A DNA stretch of 64,000 bases, taken from positions 13,888,001 through 13,952,000 of the forward strand of contig NW_026889771.1 of the NCBI RefSeq assembly GCF_033153115.1. Direction: 5' to 3'. Numbering within the stretch: position 1 is the first letter of the stretch; each line of letters opens with the position of its first letter. The position numbers and the translations under genes were made by a program. The DNA comes from Saccostrea echinata (taxonomy: Eukaryota). Under the pieces are notes generated by a model, which was not told where the DNA came from, searched no databases, and worked only from the letters and a program-made list of their open reading frames with translations. Shown here piece after piece: positions 4,279-13,446 of this stretch.

Positions 4279-7200
4279 TCAAGAAAATAGTCCCTCATTC
4301 CTCATGATTTCATTCCTAATATTTGTAAGTAAGTAGCCAAGTTTGTTCTTTCCTCTCCAGGATTTTCGGCTGTGAGCTTTGGGGTTTTGCGCACCAAGTC
4401 CGATTCCCCACAATCGATCACGTGGTGCAGCTTCCACCAGAATGCAGGGGAATGTGGCAATCAATGCTCTCATTAGATTTTTATTCTGTTTGAACTAAGA
4501 ATAGGAAGGAAACATTTAATTTATATACAAAGTCAAAACTTTACTCATTTTTTGTTTAAAAAGGAACAAGCAACTTGATAACATTCATCAACAAACAACT
4601 TTTCCAATTTTAAGGATTTAATCTCAATTATGATTGACCAAATCAGATTATTTTATATTCATCTTGATCAAATCTGAACATCTTGGACATGTAATACATG
4701 TAATTATTTTGAAGAATTGGAGAGATAAAGAGATAATCATTACCTTTGCCATAATCCCCCTCTTCACAACCTTTTCACTGATGTTAGCCCAGTGTTTGGC
4801 ATCAAAATTTTGCACTTGTCTTCCTAGTTTTTTCATTTTTACTGGATCTGTTGCTTTCATTATTTCATTGGCATGATATGGATCTTGAAATATCACTATA
4901 AAGGAAAAGTACAAGAAGTAATGTCTAGGGTGTATAAAAAAGTTTTTATAGGTTATTCCCCCTTTTACAAAACTTAAACCCAGTTGTTCATAAAGAAAGA
5001 TTGTTTACAAACATCAAAAAAATAAAAGCTTGGTCAAAACAGTGAGGAATGACAGTATTTTTAAGCAATTTCCATGTCCTATAAAGTTAAAAAAAAAATA
5101 ACTGTCTAATAAGAAACATAGTATAATAACCATCTAATGCTTCAGCTGATAAAATGGAGGATTAAAAAAATCTGCTATGACAACTTTCTACAATAATATA
5201 TTTAGGACATACAAATATTTTTTATATTTTTATGATGGCAAATATTATTGCATGACCTATTATCTCATTTGCATGACACATTTTTCTTAACCTCATAATG
5301 ATGTTTGAATGAGATTTATCTTGTTTGCATGATATATTATTATCTTATTCACACAACTCATAATGTCATTTGAACAAGATGTTATATCATTCACATTCAT
5401 TCATATAGCTAATTTGTTCCCTAAAACAGAGTTATCAATAAGTCAAGTTGCATTATTTACAATCTCCTGAAATTTTTCCTATTTTTGTGACCATCTTGAA
5501 AGAATCAAAGATAAAATGTTCACAAAACATCATTTTTGCTACTTTTAAAACTGAATTTGTATTACCGGTACATGTATAATGTAAAAAATTCCTGAATAAA
5601 AATTGAAGGCATCTAAAAATTGTTCAGTACATAACTTGGAATGACAAAAATTATGTAATGATTTTTTTGTTGTACAATATTTATTTATTGTTTTATTTAT
5701 TGAAAAAATAATTTATTTTCATTACACACATATATATAATGAAAATTTCCTGATTTACCCTTACCCACATACTGAAATCAACTTCCAATACCATATACAG
5801 TAAAAAACACATACAACGAAGTGCCAGGGATGGATGATTTTGCTTCGTTATAAACGTAATTCACTATATCTGTTAAGTTCATAATGTATTTTACAGCCAA
5901 GGGAAATGAAAATCACTTTGCTGTAAGTGTCAATTCATTATAAGCGTGTTTGCTGTAACTGTCTTTTACTGTACAAGTCTATGGCCAGCCTAATATACTA
6001 TCATAACAAAGAGATAAAATTGAATAGAAAAATCACCTCATGCGAATGAGATAATAAAACATGCAAATGAGATACGAAATATTTTGTCATGCAAATGATA
6101 TAATACCTCATGTGAATGAGACAATAAGTTGTTCATATGAGATAATAATAAGTCATGAAACCAGGATACTGTGCACCCATGCAAATGAGATAATAGTCTT
6201 GCAAACAAGGTAATAACTTAACAATGTGTGTATGACATAACATCTTGTGCAAAGAGATATCCCATGCTAATGAGATGATAAGATAAGTCATGCAAATGTG
6301 ATACATGTAATGTCTTTCAAAAGAGAAAATATGTCAAGCAAATGAGATATTTATATGTGGTGCAAACAAGATATTAATTCACGTGAATGAGATAAGTCAT
6401 GTGAACAAGATAATAAACTGAGCGAACACTGTAATATCTCGTGGGAAGGACATTAAATTTTGAGCATATTAAGAAGTAAGCATGTAAATCCTTCTTCATT
6501 ATCTGTATTTTGATTAATAAAATATCTATATTAAAAACCATTTTCAAAGCTATTGTTAAAATAAATATCACTTCCTAAATATACCACTGTAACTTTGTCA
6601 TCTTGGAAGAAACTTTTTTCCCTTTCTGCATGGTCATTTTTAATTTAGTGGAGTGAGCTTTGAAAATGACTTTTCTGGCATTGAAAGTGTGAAGACTAAT
6701 TTTTTCTTATGAAAAATAATAGTCCAAGTGGTATGACTACATATATAGAAGTTCACTTTACCTTACAACATATAAGCTGACATTGAAGTATGACAAATTA
6801 GTGTGAAAAAATGTTGACAATTCCACTTGCTAAGATTCACAGTACCAGTAATCTAAAAGCATCACATTCAACCACAATGAAGCATGGCTTTACTTTGAAC
6901 AACATATTATTACCATCTACTGAAAATTTGAACAAACCTGCTTTTTGATGCATCATATACTGCTCACTGCAGCTATAGGTGACCCCATCAAGGTCAAATT
7001 TAGCTGGATGAAAGTTACTGAACGGCGAAACCTTTCCAAAAAAGAAATGAAAGTGTTCTTTTCTGTCCTTTGAGTAATCTTGTTTCATTAAAGTTATGCT
7101 GTCTTGTAAATTTAACTTTGTTTTCTCAATCAAATCAACAGAATTAAACCGAGATTCTCTCCTTGGACTTTTTACTTTTTGGGAACTTGAGGGGTAATCT

Positions 7201-7982
7201 GGGTTGGAGTTCTTTTGCTCATCTTGGTTACGTCTGGGACTGGAACTTGCAGAAAAGTATTCACTGATATCTTTATGCTTCCTGGATCCTGTAAATTTAT
7301 CTTTGCGTGATGAAGAAAGATGTCTATCCTTGTCTCCTCCGAAGCCTGAAGATTTATCTTTGGGGTGAGAAGAAGAGTGTTGCTTATCTCTGTCCTGTCT
7401 GGAGCCTGAAGAATTATCTTTGTGTGTAGAAGAATGGTGCTTATCTCTGTCACGACTGGAACCTCGAGATTTATCTTTGTGAGTAGAAGAATGGTGCTTA
7501 TCTCTGTCACGACTGAAACCTCGAGATTTATCTTTGTGTGTAGAAGAATGGTGCTTATCTCTGTCACGACTGGAACCTCGAGATTTATCTTTATGTGGAG
7601 AAGAGTGGTGCTTACTTGTATCTCTGTCATGACTGGAACCTCGAGATTTATCTTTGTGTGTAGAAGAGTGGTACCTTTTTTCTTCCCCTTTGGAACCTGA
7701 ACTTTCATTATTTTCGGGAGAAGAGTTTTGCCCATCTTTGCCTCGTCTAGAGCTTGAATCTTCTAAATTATCAGAGGAAGAAATTTTCTTCTTCATTACT
7801 GAGACTCTATCTTTTGATGGAGATGAGTTGTGTTTATCATCAGCATCAGACATTTTTACTTTTTCTGGGTAATGCCTCTCGTCATCATTAATGTTTTCTG
7901 CAGTATCTACTGATTCATTAGATTTTAACACCTTTGCCTGCTTGCAATCATCACTCGATGTTTCACCTCCTGATCTTTTCAT
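4279..7982 (-). CDS. NADAR-domain protein A (YbiA/RibX-like N-glycosidase) with long low-complexity N-terminus, ~470 aa, 3 coding exons
   Basis: Exons 7982-6938, 4895-4744, 4494-4279 join in frame with GT-AG ends (phases 1, 0). NADAR motifs FSNFH, SEQYMMHQKA, MKKLGR, LVEAAPRDRLWGIG, WRGKNKLGYLL. Confidence 0.9.
5798..5971. mobile_element. TA-flanked MITE
   Basis: TA|CAGTAAAA ... TTTTACTG|TA. Confidence 0.6.
7270..7672 (-). repeat. Coding 54-bp tandem repeat (18 aa unit HHSSTHKDKSRGSSRDRDK, ~7 copies, degenerate at the ends)
   Basis: Unit gatttatctttgtgtgtagaagaatggtgcttatctctgtcacgactggaacctcga recurs every 54 bp in exon 1 of NADAR A. Confidence 0.9.
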
Positions 7983-12500: not shown

Positions 12501-13446
12501 GGTTTTTAAATAAAAGGATTAATGCACATGTATAAATTCTAAGTTAGAATTTTCATAAATTTCATGTTAATGAGCATTATGTAGACAACAATCATTATTT
12601 TTACTTAAAATGCTATAATGGGCACTGGATGGATGGATTCATTTACTGATCAGAGGGCTGAAAGATTAAGACTGATGCCTCAGTCTCTAGTTATAATGCT
12701 CCGAAATTTGTCAAAGTATGCAAACATCCTGATTTGATTCATAATCAAGATTGTTCAAATCATGCTGGTTCCTATCTAGGCGGGGCCACATCAAAGTTTT
12801 TCATAGGAGAATAATTGCTTTTGAAAAAAGGACAATTAATAGATGTCTCAAAGGATTGATATAGGATTGGTATAGTGATCATATAGCTAAACATTGTTTA
12901 ATTATCTTGGTGGTTATTAGGGATTTATAAATATAAATGTATGTGTTTTTTAGAATATGCCTCAAGAATCATATTGATCTGCCATAACTTTAAAAGGTTA
13001 ATTTATACTGTTTTGAATAGTGAGTTGAACCTGATAGACTGTCCAGTCCAGTGTAATTTATTTCTTCATTTTAAATGTTAAACCTTTTTTTTTTTTGCTT
13101 TCAGTTTTCCCAGGATAAAGAATTAAAAGACATTTTATTTTCAACATATCCAAGAACATTGGTTGAAGCAAGTCCTATGGACAAAATCTGGGGCATAGGG
13201 TTAGCAAAGGAGGATAGAAGAGCTTGGAATAAACAGACATGGAAGGGACAGAATCTATTAGGCGAGATCCTGACAAAAGTTAGAGACACTCTGATGACTC
13301 AGGAAGGGATTTTGGACCCAGTGGACCCAAATACACTAATGGAGGTTTCTGTAAATAAAAGTGACCCAAATGCAGCAAAGGAGGCTTCTGTAAATAAAAA
13401 TGAAGAGACTTCTGTGATGAAAGAAGATTCAGAGGCTGAAAAATAA
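9572..13446 (+). CDS. NADAR-domain protein B with acidic/charged N-terminus, ~476 aa, 3 coding exons
   Basis: Exons 9572-10508, 12107-12258, 13105-13446 in frame, GT-AG. Motifs YSQWY, AEQYMMHQKA, MKEQGR, LVEASPMDKIWGIG, WKGQNLLGEIL. Middle exon is 152 nt, identical in length to paralog A. Confidence 0.9.
10151..10357 (+). repeat. Coding 96-bp (32 aa) tandem repeat, 2 copies plus a partial third
   Basis: NERWEKNNRNEDSRGEENDRKGNKGKSKEKNR repeats at 10151 and 10247; partial copy at 10343. Confidence 0.85.
10575..11930 (-). mobile_element. 5'-truncated non-LTR retrotransposon (L2/Crack/Daphne-like) in the first coding intron of NADAR B
   Basis: Open frame 10723-~11930 encoding the end of the RT domain (GLQNCIDVLGKYCSDWKLCVNMDKT, YKYLG) and a C-terminal LRISAHPLYIETGRY..CxxC..EDEKHFVLYC zinc knuckle. 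3' AATAAA plus (GAATT)n tail at 10575-10595. Possible TAAAAA TSD. Confidence 0.85.

Follow-up and report, generated by a model that had tools for sequence, protein, structure and literature searches.

Two neighboring genes of the oyster Saccostrea echinata, hereinafter A and B, each code for a NADAR domain and are divergently transcribed within the 64-kb window (the whole stretch of DNA that was analyzed), raising the question of whether they are active host enzymes, how they came to lie side by side, and on what substrate they might act. Searching the exons singly, with the NCBI models (P0114, P0001, and P0004) used as the whole proteins, we recovered by exon-wise Pfam matches and the NCBI models the layout claimed in the original prediction, viz., three coding exons per gene, common intron positions (after HQKA in phase 1 and after MAK in phase 0), and a middle exon of 152 nt in both (Table 1). 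Every intron in the two genes is of the GT..AG type. Both products likewise display the predicted motifs EQY, KxxGR (KKLGR in A and KEQGR in B), LVEAxPxDxxWG (LVEAAPRDRLWG and LVEASPMDKIWG, respectively), and GxNxLG (GKNKLG and GQNLLG). In two genome searches, this pair were the sole NADAR genes found in S. echinata with such a three-exon split of the domain; both had already been automatically annotated and Pfam-tagged in NCBI and UniRef.

Table 1. Features of the divergent NADAR gene pair, in window coordinates
Feature	Positions	Strand	Remarks
Gene A coding exon 3	4279..4494	-	NADAR profile 101-162, 67.8 bits; LVEAAPRDRLWG and GKNKLG; TGA 4281-4279
Gene A coding exon 2	4744..4895	-	152 nt, ends ...MAK; NADAR profile 52-100, KKLGR
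Gene A coding exon 1	6938..7982	-	ATG 7982; ends ...MHQKA + 1 nt
Gene A tandem repeat	7350..7672	-	57-nt (19-aa) unit, 5.5 copies, within exon 1
Gene A 5'UTR	7983..8126	-	possible 86-nt intron 8011-8096, in one contig only
Inter-gene AT-rich interval	8127..8525		putative shared bidirectional promoter, at most ~400 bp
Gene B non-coding 5' exon	8526..8656	+	alternative donor 8884; spliced to 9570
Gene B first coding exon	9570..10508	+	ATG 9572; ends ...MHQKA + 1 nt
Gene B tandem repeat	10148..10351	+	96-nt (32-aa) unit, 2.1 copies, in first coding exon
Gene B coding exon 2	12107..12258	+	152 nt, ends ...MAK; NADAR profile 52-100, KEQGR
Gene B coding exon 3	13105..13446	+	NADAR profile 101-162, 76.1 bits; LVEASPMDKIWG and GQNLLG; TAA 13444-13446

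The N-terminal regions of the two proteins are, as had been claimed, without recognizable similarity: a BLASTP comparison of A against B aligns just the NADAR domain (41% identity over 164 aa with zero gaps). In A (XP_061182108.1, P0114; 470 aa), the first coding exon encodes a disordered S/K/D/R/H-rich N-terminus of ~304 aa, which by composition is RS-like with a net positive charge, followed by the first third of the domain (EQYMMHQKA); NCBI isoform X2 lacks 21 aa at the 7350..7672 repeat of this region. The equivalent exon of B encodes a disordered N-terminus of ~268 aa, acidic at first and basic thereafter, that leads into its own first third of the domain (EQYMMHQKA), and exon 3 appends a 43-aa acidic tail to the end of the domain. 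Both copies are expressed, as splicing is seen in RNA-like contigs from two studies: the spliced joint 4895/6938 of A is present in four runs from two studies, and the contigs of B stop exactly at 10508 and then run on, with 5'UTR joints landing at 9570. Since these contigs splice the 5'UTR exon of B (donor 8656 or 8884) to 9570, the ATG initially assigned to this gene (9518) is wrong, as it sits upstream of the splice acceptor; the real start is ATG 9572 (MAEKDLEHQ...), in agreement with NCBI XP_061182107.1. The limits of the inter-gene interval are those of the outermost transcript evidence, where contig ends cannot fix the true starts. Intron 1 of B additionally harbors a 378-aa ORF (10723..11859, - strand) that matches no Pfam family and, by tblastn, none of the sampled NADAR-bearing LINEs.

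A profile search supports the domain assignment throughout: in each gene the three exons together cover PF08719, at positions 1/9-49, 52-100, and 101-162, with exons 2 and 3 singly above 35.1 bits, and the whole NCBI proteins score 162.5 and 165.3 bits with TIGR02464, the model for bacterial riboflavin-intermediate N-glycosidases, against a cut-off of 73.7. Taking the solved structure of the P. nicotianae NADAR with ADPr as the reference for the active-site positions (residue roles from PMC11543638), we found all nine of these, namely E43, K50, K75, R79, Y84(F), W89, E125, D130, and W133, to be kept in both A and B. The catalytic and ADPr-binding residues are also kept in 21 further homologs; the exceptions are P0036, which has a Ser at D130, and a splice isoform of Ostrea edulis (X1, P0115), which differs at the final three positions. 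AlphaFold2 predicts both domains with pLDDT > 94, and Foldseek returns 8BAU (E about 5e-11) and 2B3W as top matches with a probability of 1.00; model A further shows two short helices (283-300) of moderate confidence, and model B none. Judged by residues and predicted fold, both domains are intact NADAR enzyme domains.

By this comparison, the two domains are not of the type found in DarT1-associated antitoxins. The DarG1/BC4488 antitoxins (G. lovleyi, 8BAT) belong to the same superfamily, and the equivalents of E88 and K95 are conserved in the oyster domains, but their defining feature is an Asp in the last strand (PMC11543638; PMC11125620), whereas A and B have Glu (LVEA), the type seen in the YbiA and 'NADAR' families. 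The predicted structures match 8BAU and 2B3W rather than 8BAT, which is a weak match of A (E 0.5, TM 0.41, 12% identity) and is absent from the listed matches of B. Moreover, these antitoxins are encoded beside DarT1, whereas the DarT search of the oyster genome was empty, with a silent control. DarG1-type antitoxins also have a structured, basic beta1-beta2-alpha1 extension at the N-terminus, which makes up a groove for DNA; the relevant observation in the oyster models is the two short helices of A. The predicted chemistry, guanine-N2 de-ADP-ribosylation, serves as the model for the function that we propose for the pair. The closest system is instead that formed by the P. nicotianae NADAR (8BAU) and the non-DarT 'NADAR' family, which includes the Amphimedon queenslandica NADAR and S. 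coelicolor SCO5665 (PMC11543638; PMC12945103). The P. nicotianae protein is the best fold match (TM 0.71-0.73, 29-32% identity), shares with the pair every ADPr-contacting residue and the E-x4-D-x2-W spacing (PMC11543638), and is likewise a stand-alone eukaryotic NADAR without a DarT link; unlike it and the 'NADAR' family, the oyster proteins have ~270-300-aa disordered, charged, repeat-bearing N-termini, and their genes form a conserved divergent pair. E. coli YbiA (2B3W) has the same fold and glutamate-type active site as the oyster proteins, which score above the TIGR02464 cut-off, but is a single-domain 160-aa bacterial protein, and the oyster host is without a riboflavin pathway. Among animals, C. 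elegans SNA-3 is a nuclear protein composed of NADAR domains (PMC9303266); it has three of them and a nematode-specific trans-splicing role.

As for the origin of the pair, the idea of an old inverted duplication proved right as to age, which it even understated, while its local, inverted nature is unsupported. Beyond the 41% identity, synonymous divergence between A and B is saturated (pS 0.80; dN 0.52; Nei-Gojobori, exon by exon), and the tree, together with an AU test on a group chosen after the tree was seen (p=0.013), places them in different mollusc-wide lineages, against an oyster-only duplication. By these sequence comparisons A and B are ancient paralogs, whose split predates the divergence of bivalves and gastropods. 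Given their placement in different mollusc-wide lineages, the common introns are ancestral and constitute no evidence for a local inverted duplication. NADARs of the A and B types are found also in gastropods and a nemertean, a Littorina homolog carrying the C. elegans-derived name 'F44E2.8-like'. The predicted conservation of the domain is evident across oysters, with 66-86% identity, retention of the active-site positions, and hardly any gaps (one comparison among seven contains six gap columns, the others none); the N-termini show 26-75% identity and many indels. In S. echinata, O. edulis, and Littorina, the accession or LOC numbers of the A and B types follow one another directly, and in S. 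cucullata both types lie on one 166-kb contig. Accession order, rather than coordinates, thus suggests that the two are also adjacent in O. edulis and that they probably are in a gastropod, Littorina. Such lasting adjacency of two ancient lineages hints at co-regulation or divided labor. Oysters have a third NADAR type ('N-glycosidase YbiA', P0106/P0036), but a search of S. echinata did not find it, the best matches being the exons of gene A.

We are inclined, by a modest degree, to view this ancient, adjacent pair of Glu-type NADARs with disordered tails as likely N-glycosidic base-ADP-ribosylhydrolases, the mechanism being one that we infer. On this view, the exocyclic amino group of guanine in DNA or RNA, and probably that of cytosine, would be freed of ADP-ribose by both proteins. 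This proposal derives from the fact that such hydrolysis is the one activity common to all NADAR families assayed to date, the sponge enzyme included: all four families remove G-ADPr, the sponge NADAR acts on both G- and C-ADPr, and the activity is directed at guanine-N2 and not at the PARP-made N1 and U-N3 marks (PMC12945103; PMC11833690; bioRxiv 10.64898/2026.03.31.715305; PMC13036486). The statement that animal NADARs are poorly characterized still holds in general, although the sponge member has since been shown to be active on G/C-ADPr (PMC12945103). Going by composition, we would guess that each enzyme is probably guided by its disordered tail, whether to a compartment rich in nucleic acids or to a substrate different from that of the other. 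The pair in itself leaves knowledge of the NADAR family unchanged, and the genes were already predicted in NCBI and UniRef; it does supply two expressed mollusc genes, with their active sites intact, as concrete candidates. NADARs are the sole erasers known for ADP-ribose on guanine-N2 and cytosine and, to our knowledge, are absent from vertebrates.

The modification to be erased could stem from microbial pierisin-family genotoxins or from endogenous CARP-1-type ARTs. That the pair defends a filter feeder against exogenous toxins of the ScARP/Scabin type, repairing base-ADP-ribosylated host DNA or RNA, would involve enzymology identical to that of the base-ADP-ribosylhydrolases proposed above; the same role has been put forward for the NADARs of sponges, corals, and sea cucumbers, and in ladybirds NADARs gained by horizontal transfer contribute to immunity (PMC12945103), yet as a specific account of the oyster genes we hold it to be rather unlikely. 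We deem it improbable that they are the eraser or self-protection arm set against an endogenous bivalve CARP-1-family guanine ADP-ribosyltransferase, whether undoing marks on the oyster's own nucleic acids or regulating an endogenous reversible base modification. CARP-1 homologs are reported mainly in Bivalvia (PMC12945103), NADARs are the sole known erasers of N2-guanine ADPr (PMC12945103; PMC11833690; PMC11209040), and A and B each have an intact active site; however, the DNA ADP-ribosylating activity is reported from clams, with oysters not named (PMC11209040), and the occurrence of A/B types in gastropods and a nemertean makes the family broader than the reported range of CARP-1. Nor is there an ART among the large ORFs checked in the window, and a literature search for NADARs in bivalves matched author names only. 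Across the genome, DarT (PF14487), Enterotoxin_a (PF01375), and ADPrib_exo_Tox (PF03496) gave zero matches, which are weak negatives as the controls were silent. The sole ARTC-type match (PF01129) is one ORF on another chromosome (C54, L010 3525..4310, - strand). Its signature is R / STS / E-D-E, it resembles an arginine-ART rather than a pierisin/CARP-1-type enzyme, and it has no PDB sequence match. More speculatively, and as something of a long shot, oysters, and molluscs at large, might run an endogenous, reversible guanine/cytosine ADP-ribosylation with CARP-1-family writers and the co-regulated pair as two specialized erasers; were this so, one might serve DNA or chromatin and the other RNA or the nucleolus, each steered by its own disordered tail.

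We see little chance that the pair are small-molecule N-glycosidases like E. coli YbiA, clearing reactive ribosylamino-pyrimidine intermediates or damaged nucleotide metabolites instead of acting on nucleic acids: the TIGR02464 scores (162.5 and 165.3 bits against 73.7) and the high rank of 2B3W in both the fold and the sequence matches are consistent with this, but GTP cyclohydrolase II (PF00925) is absent from the genome in a search whose control was positive in 10 of 14 bacteria, so that riboflavin intermediates are not host-made, G-ADPr is also a substrate of YbiA itself (PMC11125620; PMC12945103), and charged disordered tails of ~300 aa are hard to explain for metabolite repair. SNA-3, a three-NADAR-domain protein of the C. 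elegans SL1 trans-splicing machinery (PMC9303266), offers an analogy for a nuclear RNA-processing or scaffold role in which catalysis is perhaps secondary. The RS-like N-terminus of A, the automatic names of its orthologs ('serine/arginine-rich splicing factor 4' and 'peptidyl-prolyl isomerase G-like'), and the naming of the Littorina homolog after a C. elegans gene all point this way; we nonetheless rate such a role as very improbable, since the ortholog names reflect composition only and the strict conservation of the catalytic positions favors an enzyme. The same genome also offers a different potential source for the pair, in that it contains at least 146 NADAR matches, the majority complete domains without introns; the five intronless copies inspected are all LINE ORF1 cargo directly upstream of an endonuclease-RT ORF2, and NADAR domains in the ORF1 of Tx1-type LINEs have been noted in C. 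gigas (PMC12477816). Domestication of such an ORF1 copy can practically be dismissed as the origin of A and B, and we rejected it: the host pair has two ancestral introns in the domain, no ORF2, and mollusc-wide orthologs, and the LINE NADARs branch as a clade of their own, far removed and lying beyond a bacterial homolog, and score 53-71 bits with a host-type HMM against 230-298 bits.

The host pair is thus clearly set apart from the LINE-borne NADARs that far outnumber it in this genome. The LINE copies belong to the same Pfam family and keep the catalytic E and K, but they have no introns, a CCHC knuckle often precedes and an APE-RT ORF2 directly follows them, and their matches exceed 100. 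If molluscs did run the reversible base modification considered above, the same pressure might account for the NADAR domain carried by oyster LINEs. Some copies of this deep clade have a His at the last-strand position, like phage NADARs.

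Two divergent protein-coding genes, A and B, occupy window 4279-13446 of the blacklip rock oyster, Saccostrea echinata, with GT..AG borders at every intron. In both, the first coding exon ends in EQYMMHQKA plus one base (phase 1), and the middle exon, exactly 152 nt long, ends in MAK (phase 0). Exon-by-exon Pfam searches, in which our exon models were used singly and unjoined (full-length proteins being the NCBI models), match all three exons of each gene to the NADAR profile PF08719, which tiles them alike at 1/9-49, 52-100, and 101-162; exons 2 and 3 each exceed its gathering score on their own. 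The exon models and the tiling thus agree with the original prediction of two divergent NADAR genes with common intron positions and a 152-nt middle exon, and the four motifs it named (EQY, KxxGR, LVEAxPxDxxWG, and GxNxLG) are found in both. The N-termini had also been held to be unrelated: BLASTP accordingly aligns the 164-residue domain alone (41% identity, 67% positives, 0 gaps), with no similarity detected between the two N-termini. Gene A corresponds to XP_061182108.1 (470 aa, the length of our model), with a second isoform X2 (XP_061182109.1, 449 aa) named 'protein starmaker-like', and gene B to XP_061182107.1 (LOC133190468, 476 aa). The descriptive names of the annotated proteins are artefacts of low-complexity composition. 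Both genes lie on one 19.7-Mb scaffold, were already predicted, and carry a precomputed PF08719 tag; mollusc NADARs are likewise already mentioned in the literature. The modestly new point is an anciently conserved pair, divergent in S. echinata, with distinct disordered tails and an adjacency elsewhere suggested by accession order.

Coordinates of the NADAR genes, other large open reading frames of the window, and related loci of the S. echinata genome (G000)
Feature	Location	Strand	Remarks
Gene A coding exons	Window 7982..6938, 4895..4744, 4494..4279	-	
Gene B coding exons	Window 9570..10508, 12107..12258, 13105..13446	+	
TEX33 family domain ORF	Window 22524-23426	+	
Amino-acid transporter fragment ORF	Window 27923-28687	-	
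RNA polymerase III RPC5 C-terminal domain ORF	Window 50923-51462	-	
Mariner-type DDE transposase ORF	Window 62340-63410	-	
Arginine-ART-like ORF, 261 aa	L010 3525-4310 = G000:C54:46134525-46135310	-	PF01129, 36 bits
LINE NADAR ORF1	L001 2245-3609	-	PF08719 match
LINE NADAR ORF1	L002 2021-3283 (ORF2 3280-5187)	+	PF08719 match; endonuclease-RT ORF2 directly downstream
Further LINE NADAR copies	L004, L005, L006		Endonuclease-RT ORF2 directly downstream

The NADAR family assignment of A and B is robust. Sequence searches of the PDB with the gene A protein recover E. coli YbiA (2B3W, E 4.9e-17) and the Phytophthora nicotianae NADAR-ADP-ribose complex (8BAU, E 6.8e-17). Counting equivalences on the sequence alignment, with residue roles taken from PMC11543638, A has counterparts of E43, K50, K75, G78, R79, V81, Y84 (as F), W89, E125, D130, and W133. 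Nine of these positions are identical in B and 21 further homologs, with two exceptions, namely the O. edulis splice isoform X1 (P0115), which deviates at the last three positions, and a second O. edulis protein (P0036) with Ser at the D130 position. AlphaFold2 models of both proteins show pLDDT > 94 in the domain and < 50 over essentially the entire N-terminus, and Foldseek places 8BAU and 2B3W at the top ranks for both (E 5e-11 to 9e-9). The original prediction had drawn an analogy to the antitoxins of DarT1 systems; however, the BC4488/DarG1 family associated with DarT1 is defined by an aspartate in the last strand (PMC11543638; PMC11125620), and this residue is a glutamate in A and B, which therefore belong with the YbiA/'NADAR' families and not with BC4488/DarG1. 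The structural comparison it proposed with DarT1-associated NADARs also fails to favor that kinship, the DarG1-type structure 8BAT being a marginal match for model A (E 0.5, TM 0.41) and missing from the list for model B. Despite the differing residue, the predicted chemistry may still equal that of the DarT1 type.

All NADAR families tested share the ability to strip ADP-ribose from guanine-N2 in DNA and RNA; cytosine is also a target of members of the 'NADAR' and YbiA families, including a sponge enzyme, and there is no action on phosphate-end, 2'-OH, G-N1, or U-N3 marks (PMC11543638; PMC11125620; PMC11833690; PMC12945103; PMC13036486; bioRxiv 10.64898/2026.03.31.715305). An ADP-ribose-erasing enzymology is hence plausible for A and B, which we regard as two supported candidate base-ADPr hydrolases. 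TIGR02464, which models the bacterial riboflavin-intermediate N-glycosidase domain, also matches both whole proteins at 162-165 bits; however, GTP cyclohydrolase II is absent from the S. echinata genome (the control search being positive in 10 of 14 bacteria), and the canonical YbiA substrates are therefore not produced by the host. On the writer side, CARP-1 homologues are reported chiefly in Bivalvia (PMC12945103), and six edible clams proved positive for DNA ADP-ribosylating activity (PMC11209040). No ART was found among the other large ORFs of the 64-kb window, and since nothing in the present analysis ties the pair to a writer, its designation as a 'module' in the toxin-antitoxin sense is unsupported. 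Genome searches with the DarT, Enterotoxin_a, and ADPrib_exo_Tox profiles gave no match, a weak negative as the controls were uninformative. PF01129 gave a single, arginine-ART-like match on another chromosome than the window; this 261-aa ORF, the only ARTC-type match found in the genome, displays an R/STS/E-D-E signature, has no PDB sequence match, and has rotifer and chordate arginine-ARTs as its protein-atlas neighbors.

The S. echinata assembly contains at least 146 PF08719 matches, most of them complete intronless domains in 400-455-aa ORFs on many chromosomes. At five of six loci inspected, the NADAR ORF is immediately followed by an ORF combining an Exo_endo_phos endonuclease and a reverse transcriptase, and one ORF1 also bears a CCHC knuckle: the inspected intronless ORFs are ORF1 of a non-LTR retrotransposon (LINE). 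NADARs in C. gigas Tx1 LINEs have been mentioned in passing (PMC12477816). Derivation of the window pair by domestication of such an ORF1 is ruled out by the scores of LINE copies against a host-type domain HMM (53-71 bits, vs 230-298 bits for host genes) and by the tree, in which the LINE domains form a clade separate from the host pair. Across these genome searches, the profile split at 49|52 and 100|101 is seen only at the window pair. Among the LINE copies, the ORF1 NADARs of L001, L005, and L006 keep the last-strand Glu, and those of L002 and L004 have His in place of this host catalytic residue (IYAHSVYD), as has been described for phage NADARs.

The pair had been proposed to be an old inverted duplication. 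Its age stands, and is far greater than was implied: synonymous differences between A and B are saturated (pS 0.80; dN 0.52). Maximum-likelihood analysis of 31 NADAR domains pairs B with a Littorina (gastropod) protein (support 96/88) and joins A to a third oyster type, annotated 'N-glycosidase YbiA' in M. gigas and O. edulis; the LINE-borne domains and a bacterial homolog fall outside. The AU test rejects a single oyster clade of all three types excluding gastropod and nemertean sequences (p 0.013, for a group defined after the tree was seen). A 95-sequence tree, whose backbone is weak, places A (Pecten maximus nearby) and B (Mactra antiquata nearby) in separate clades. The common intron positions are therefore ancestral, and a local inverted duplication is not upheld. 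Database proteins that read into the intron, after HQKA in an Ostrea B-type protein (P0006) and after AK in two others (P0020 and P0022), show the same exon boundaries in other genomes. For the third oyster type (P0106 of M. gigas, P0036 of O. edulis), the S. echinata assembly offers no separate locus: the best matches are to the exons of gene A.

The gene neighborhoods suggest that NADAR genes remained clustered across molluscs, as read outside the window from accession/LOC order and shared contigs rather than gene coordinates, and with orientation read in S. echinata: both orthologs are on one 166-kb contig in S. cucullata; B (LOC125668164) and A (LOC125668165) of O. edulis have consecutive XP numbers on one chromosome; the two types of Littorina saxatilis (KAK7115551/52 and KAK7115553) share a chromosome; and three Mytilus NADAR entries are consecutive.

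The 304-aa N-terminus of A is 23% Ser, with plentiful K/D/R/H and a net charge of +17, and includes a tandem repeat of 57 nt (19 aa) in 5.5 copies (window 7350-7672). In B, the N-terminus (268 aa) starts with a strongly acidic half (-31) followed by a basic one (+9) and contains 2.1 copies of a 96-nt repeat; the protein ends in an acidic 43-aa tail. Domain identity among oyster orthologs is 66-86%, with gapless alignment in six of seven comparisons, whereas the tails show 26-75% identity and many indels, the pattern expected of a constrained enzyme bearing fast-evolving disordered regions; the proposal that both copies are kept under selection is borne out to the extent that both genes are constrained. 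The 21 aa missing from isoform X2 of A fall within the 57-nt repeat array, where RNA contigs also break; their absence might reflect either true alternative splicing or a repeat-length artefact.

We aligned contigs from four public runs of two studies to window 4700-10650. The runs were tagged 'RNA?' by guess only, but the contigs lack introns and have canonical splice boundaries, and are therefore transcript-derived. All four runs contain the joint 4895/6938 of gene A, which leaves out exactly the predicted 2042-nt intron (CT..AC on the + strand), and gene B contigs break off exactly at 10508 before continuing into sequence outside the aligned interval, expected to be exon 2. Both genes are thus expressed. 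Two gene B contigs join a non-coding upstream exon, with its donor at 8656 in one run and 8884 in another, to the acceptor 9569/9570; ATG 9518, the start implied by the original gene model, is therefore intronic, and the true initiation codon, ATG 9572, matches that of the NCBI model. Transcript evidence for A reaches at least 8010, and probably ~8126 through a small 5'UTR intron (one contig), and that for B begins at 8526 or earlier, so that the two have in common an AT-rich interval of at most ~400 bp, the contigs giving neither true transcript starts nor expression levels.

The first intron of gene B harbors a 378-aa ORF (10723-11859, - strand) that resembles the C-terminal portion of a retrotransposon ORF2; Pfam gave no match for it, and tblastn none to the NADAR-LINEs sampled. 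In intron 1 of gene A, numerous RNA-like contigs pile up to high depth on a short repeat (5543-5974) and extend into unrelated sequence; the repeat is probably a transcribed dispersed element. A contig from one RNA-like run (X5, organism B) differs at 2 of 506 bases from gene A exon 1 (6938-7443) and at 51 of 878 from gene B exon 1 (9631-10508); possible reasons for the excess in B are a divergent haplotype, a different species, or a faster-evolving B tail.
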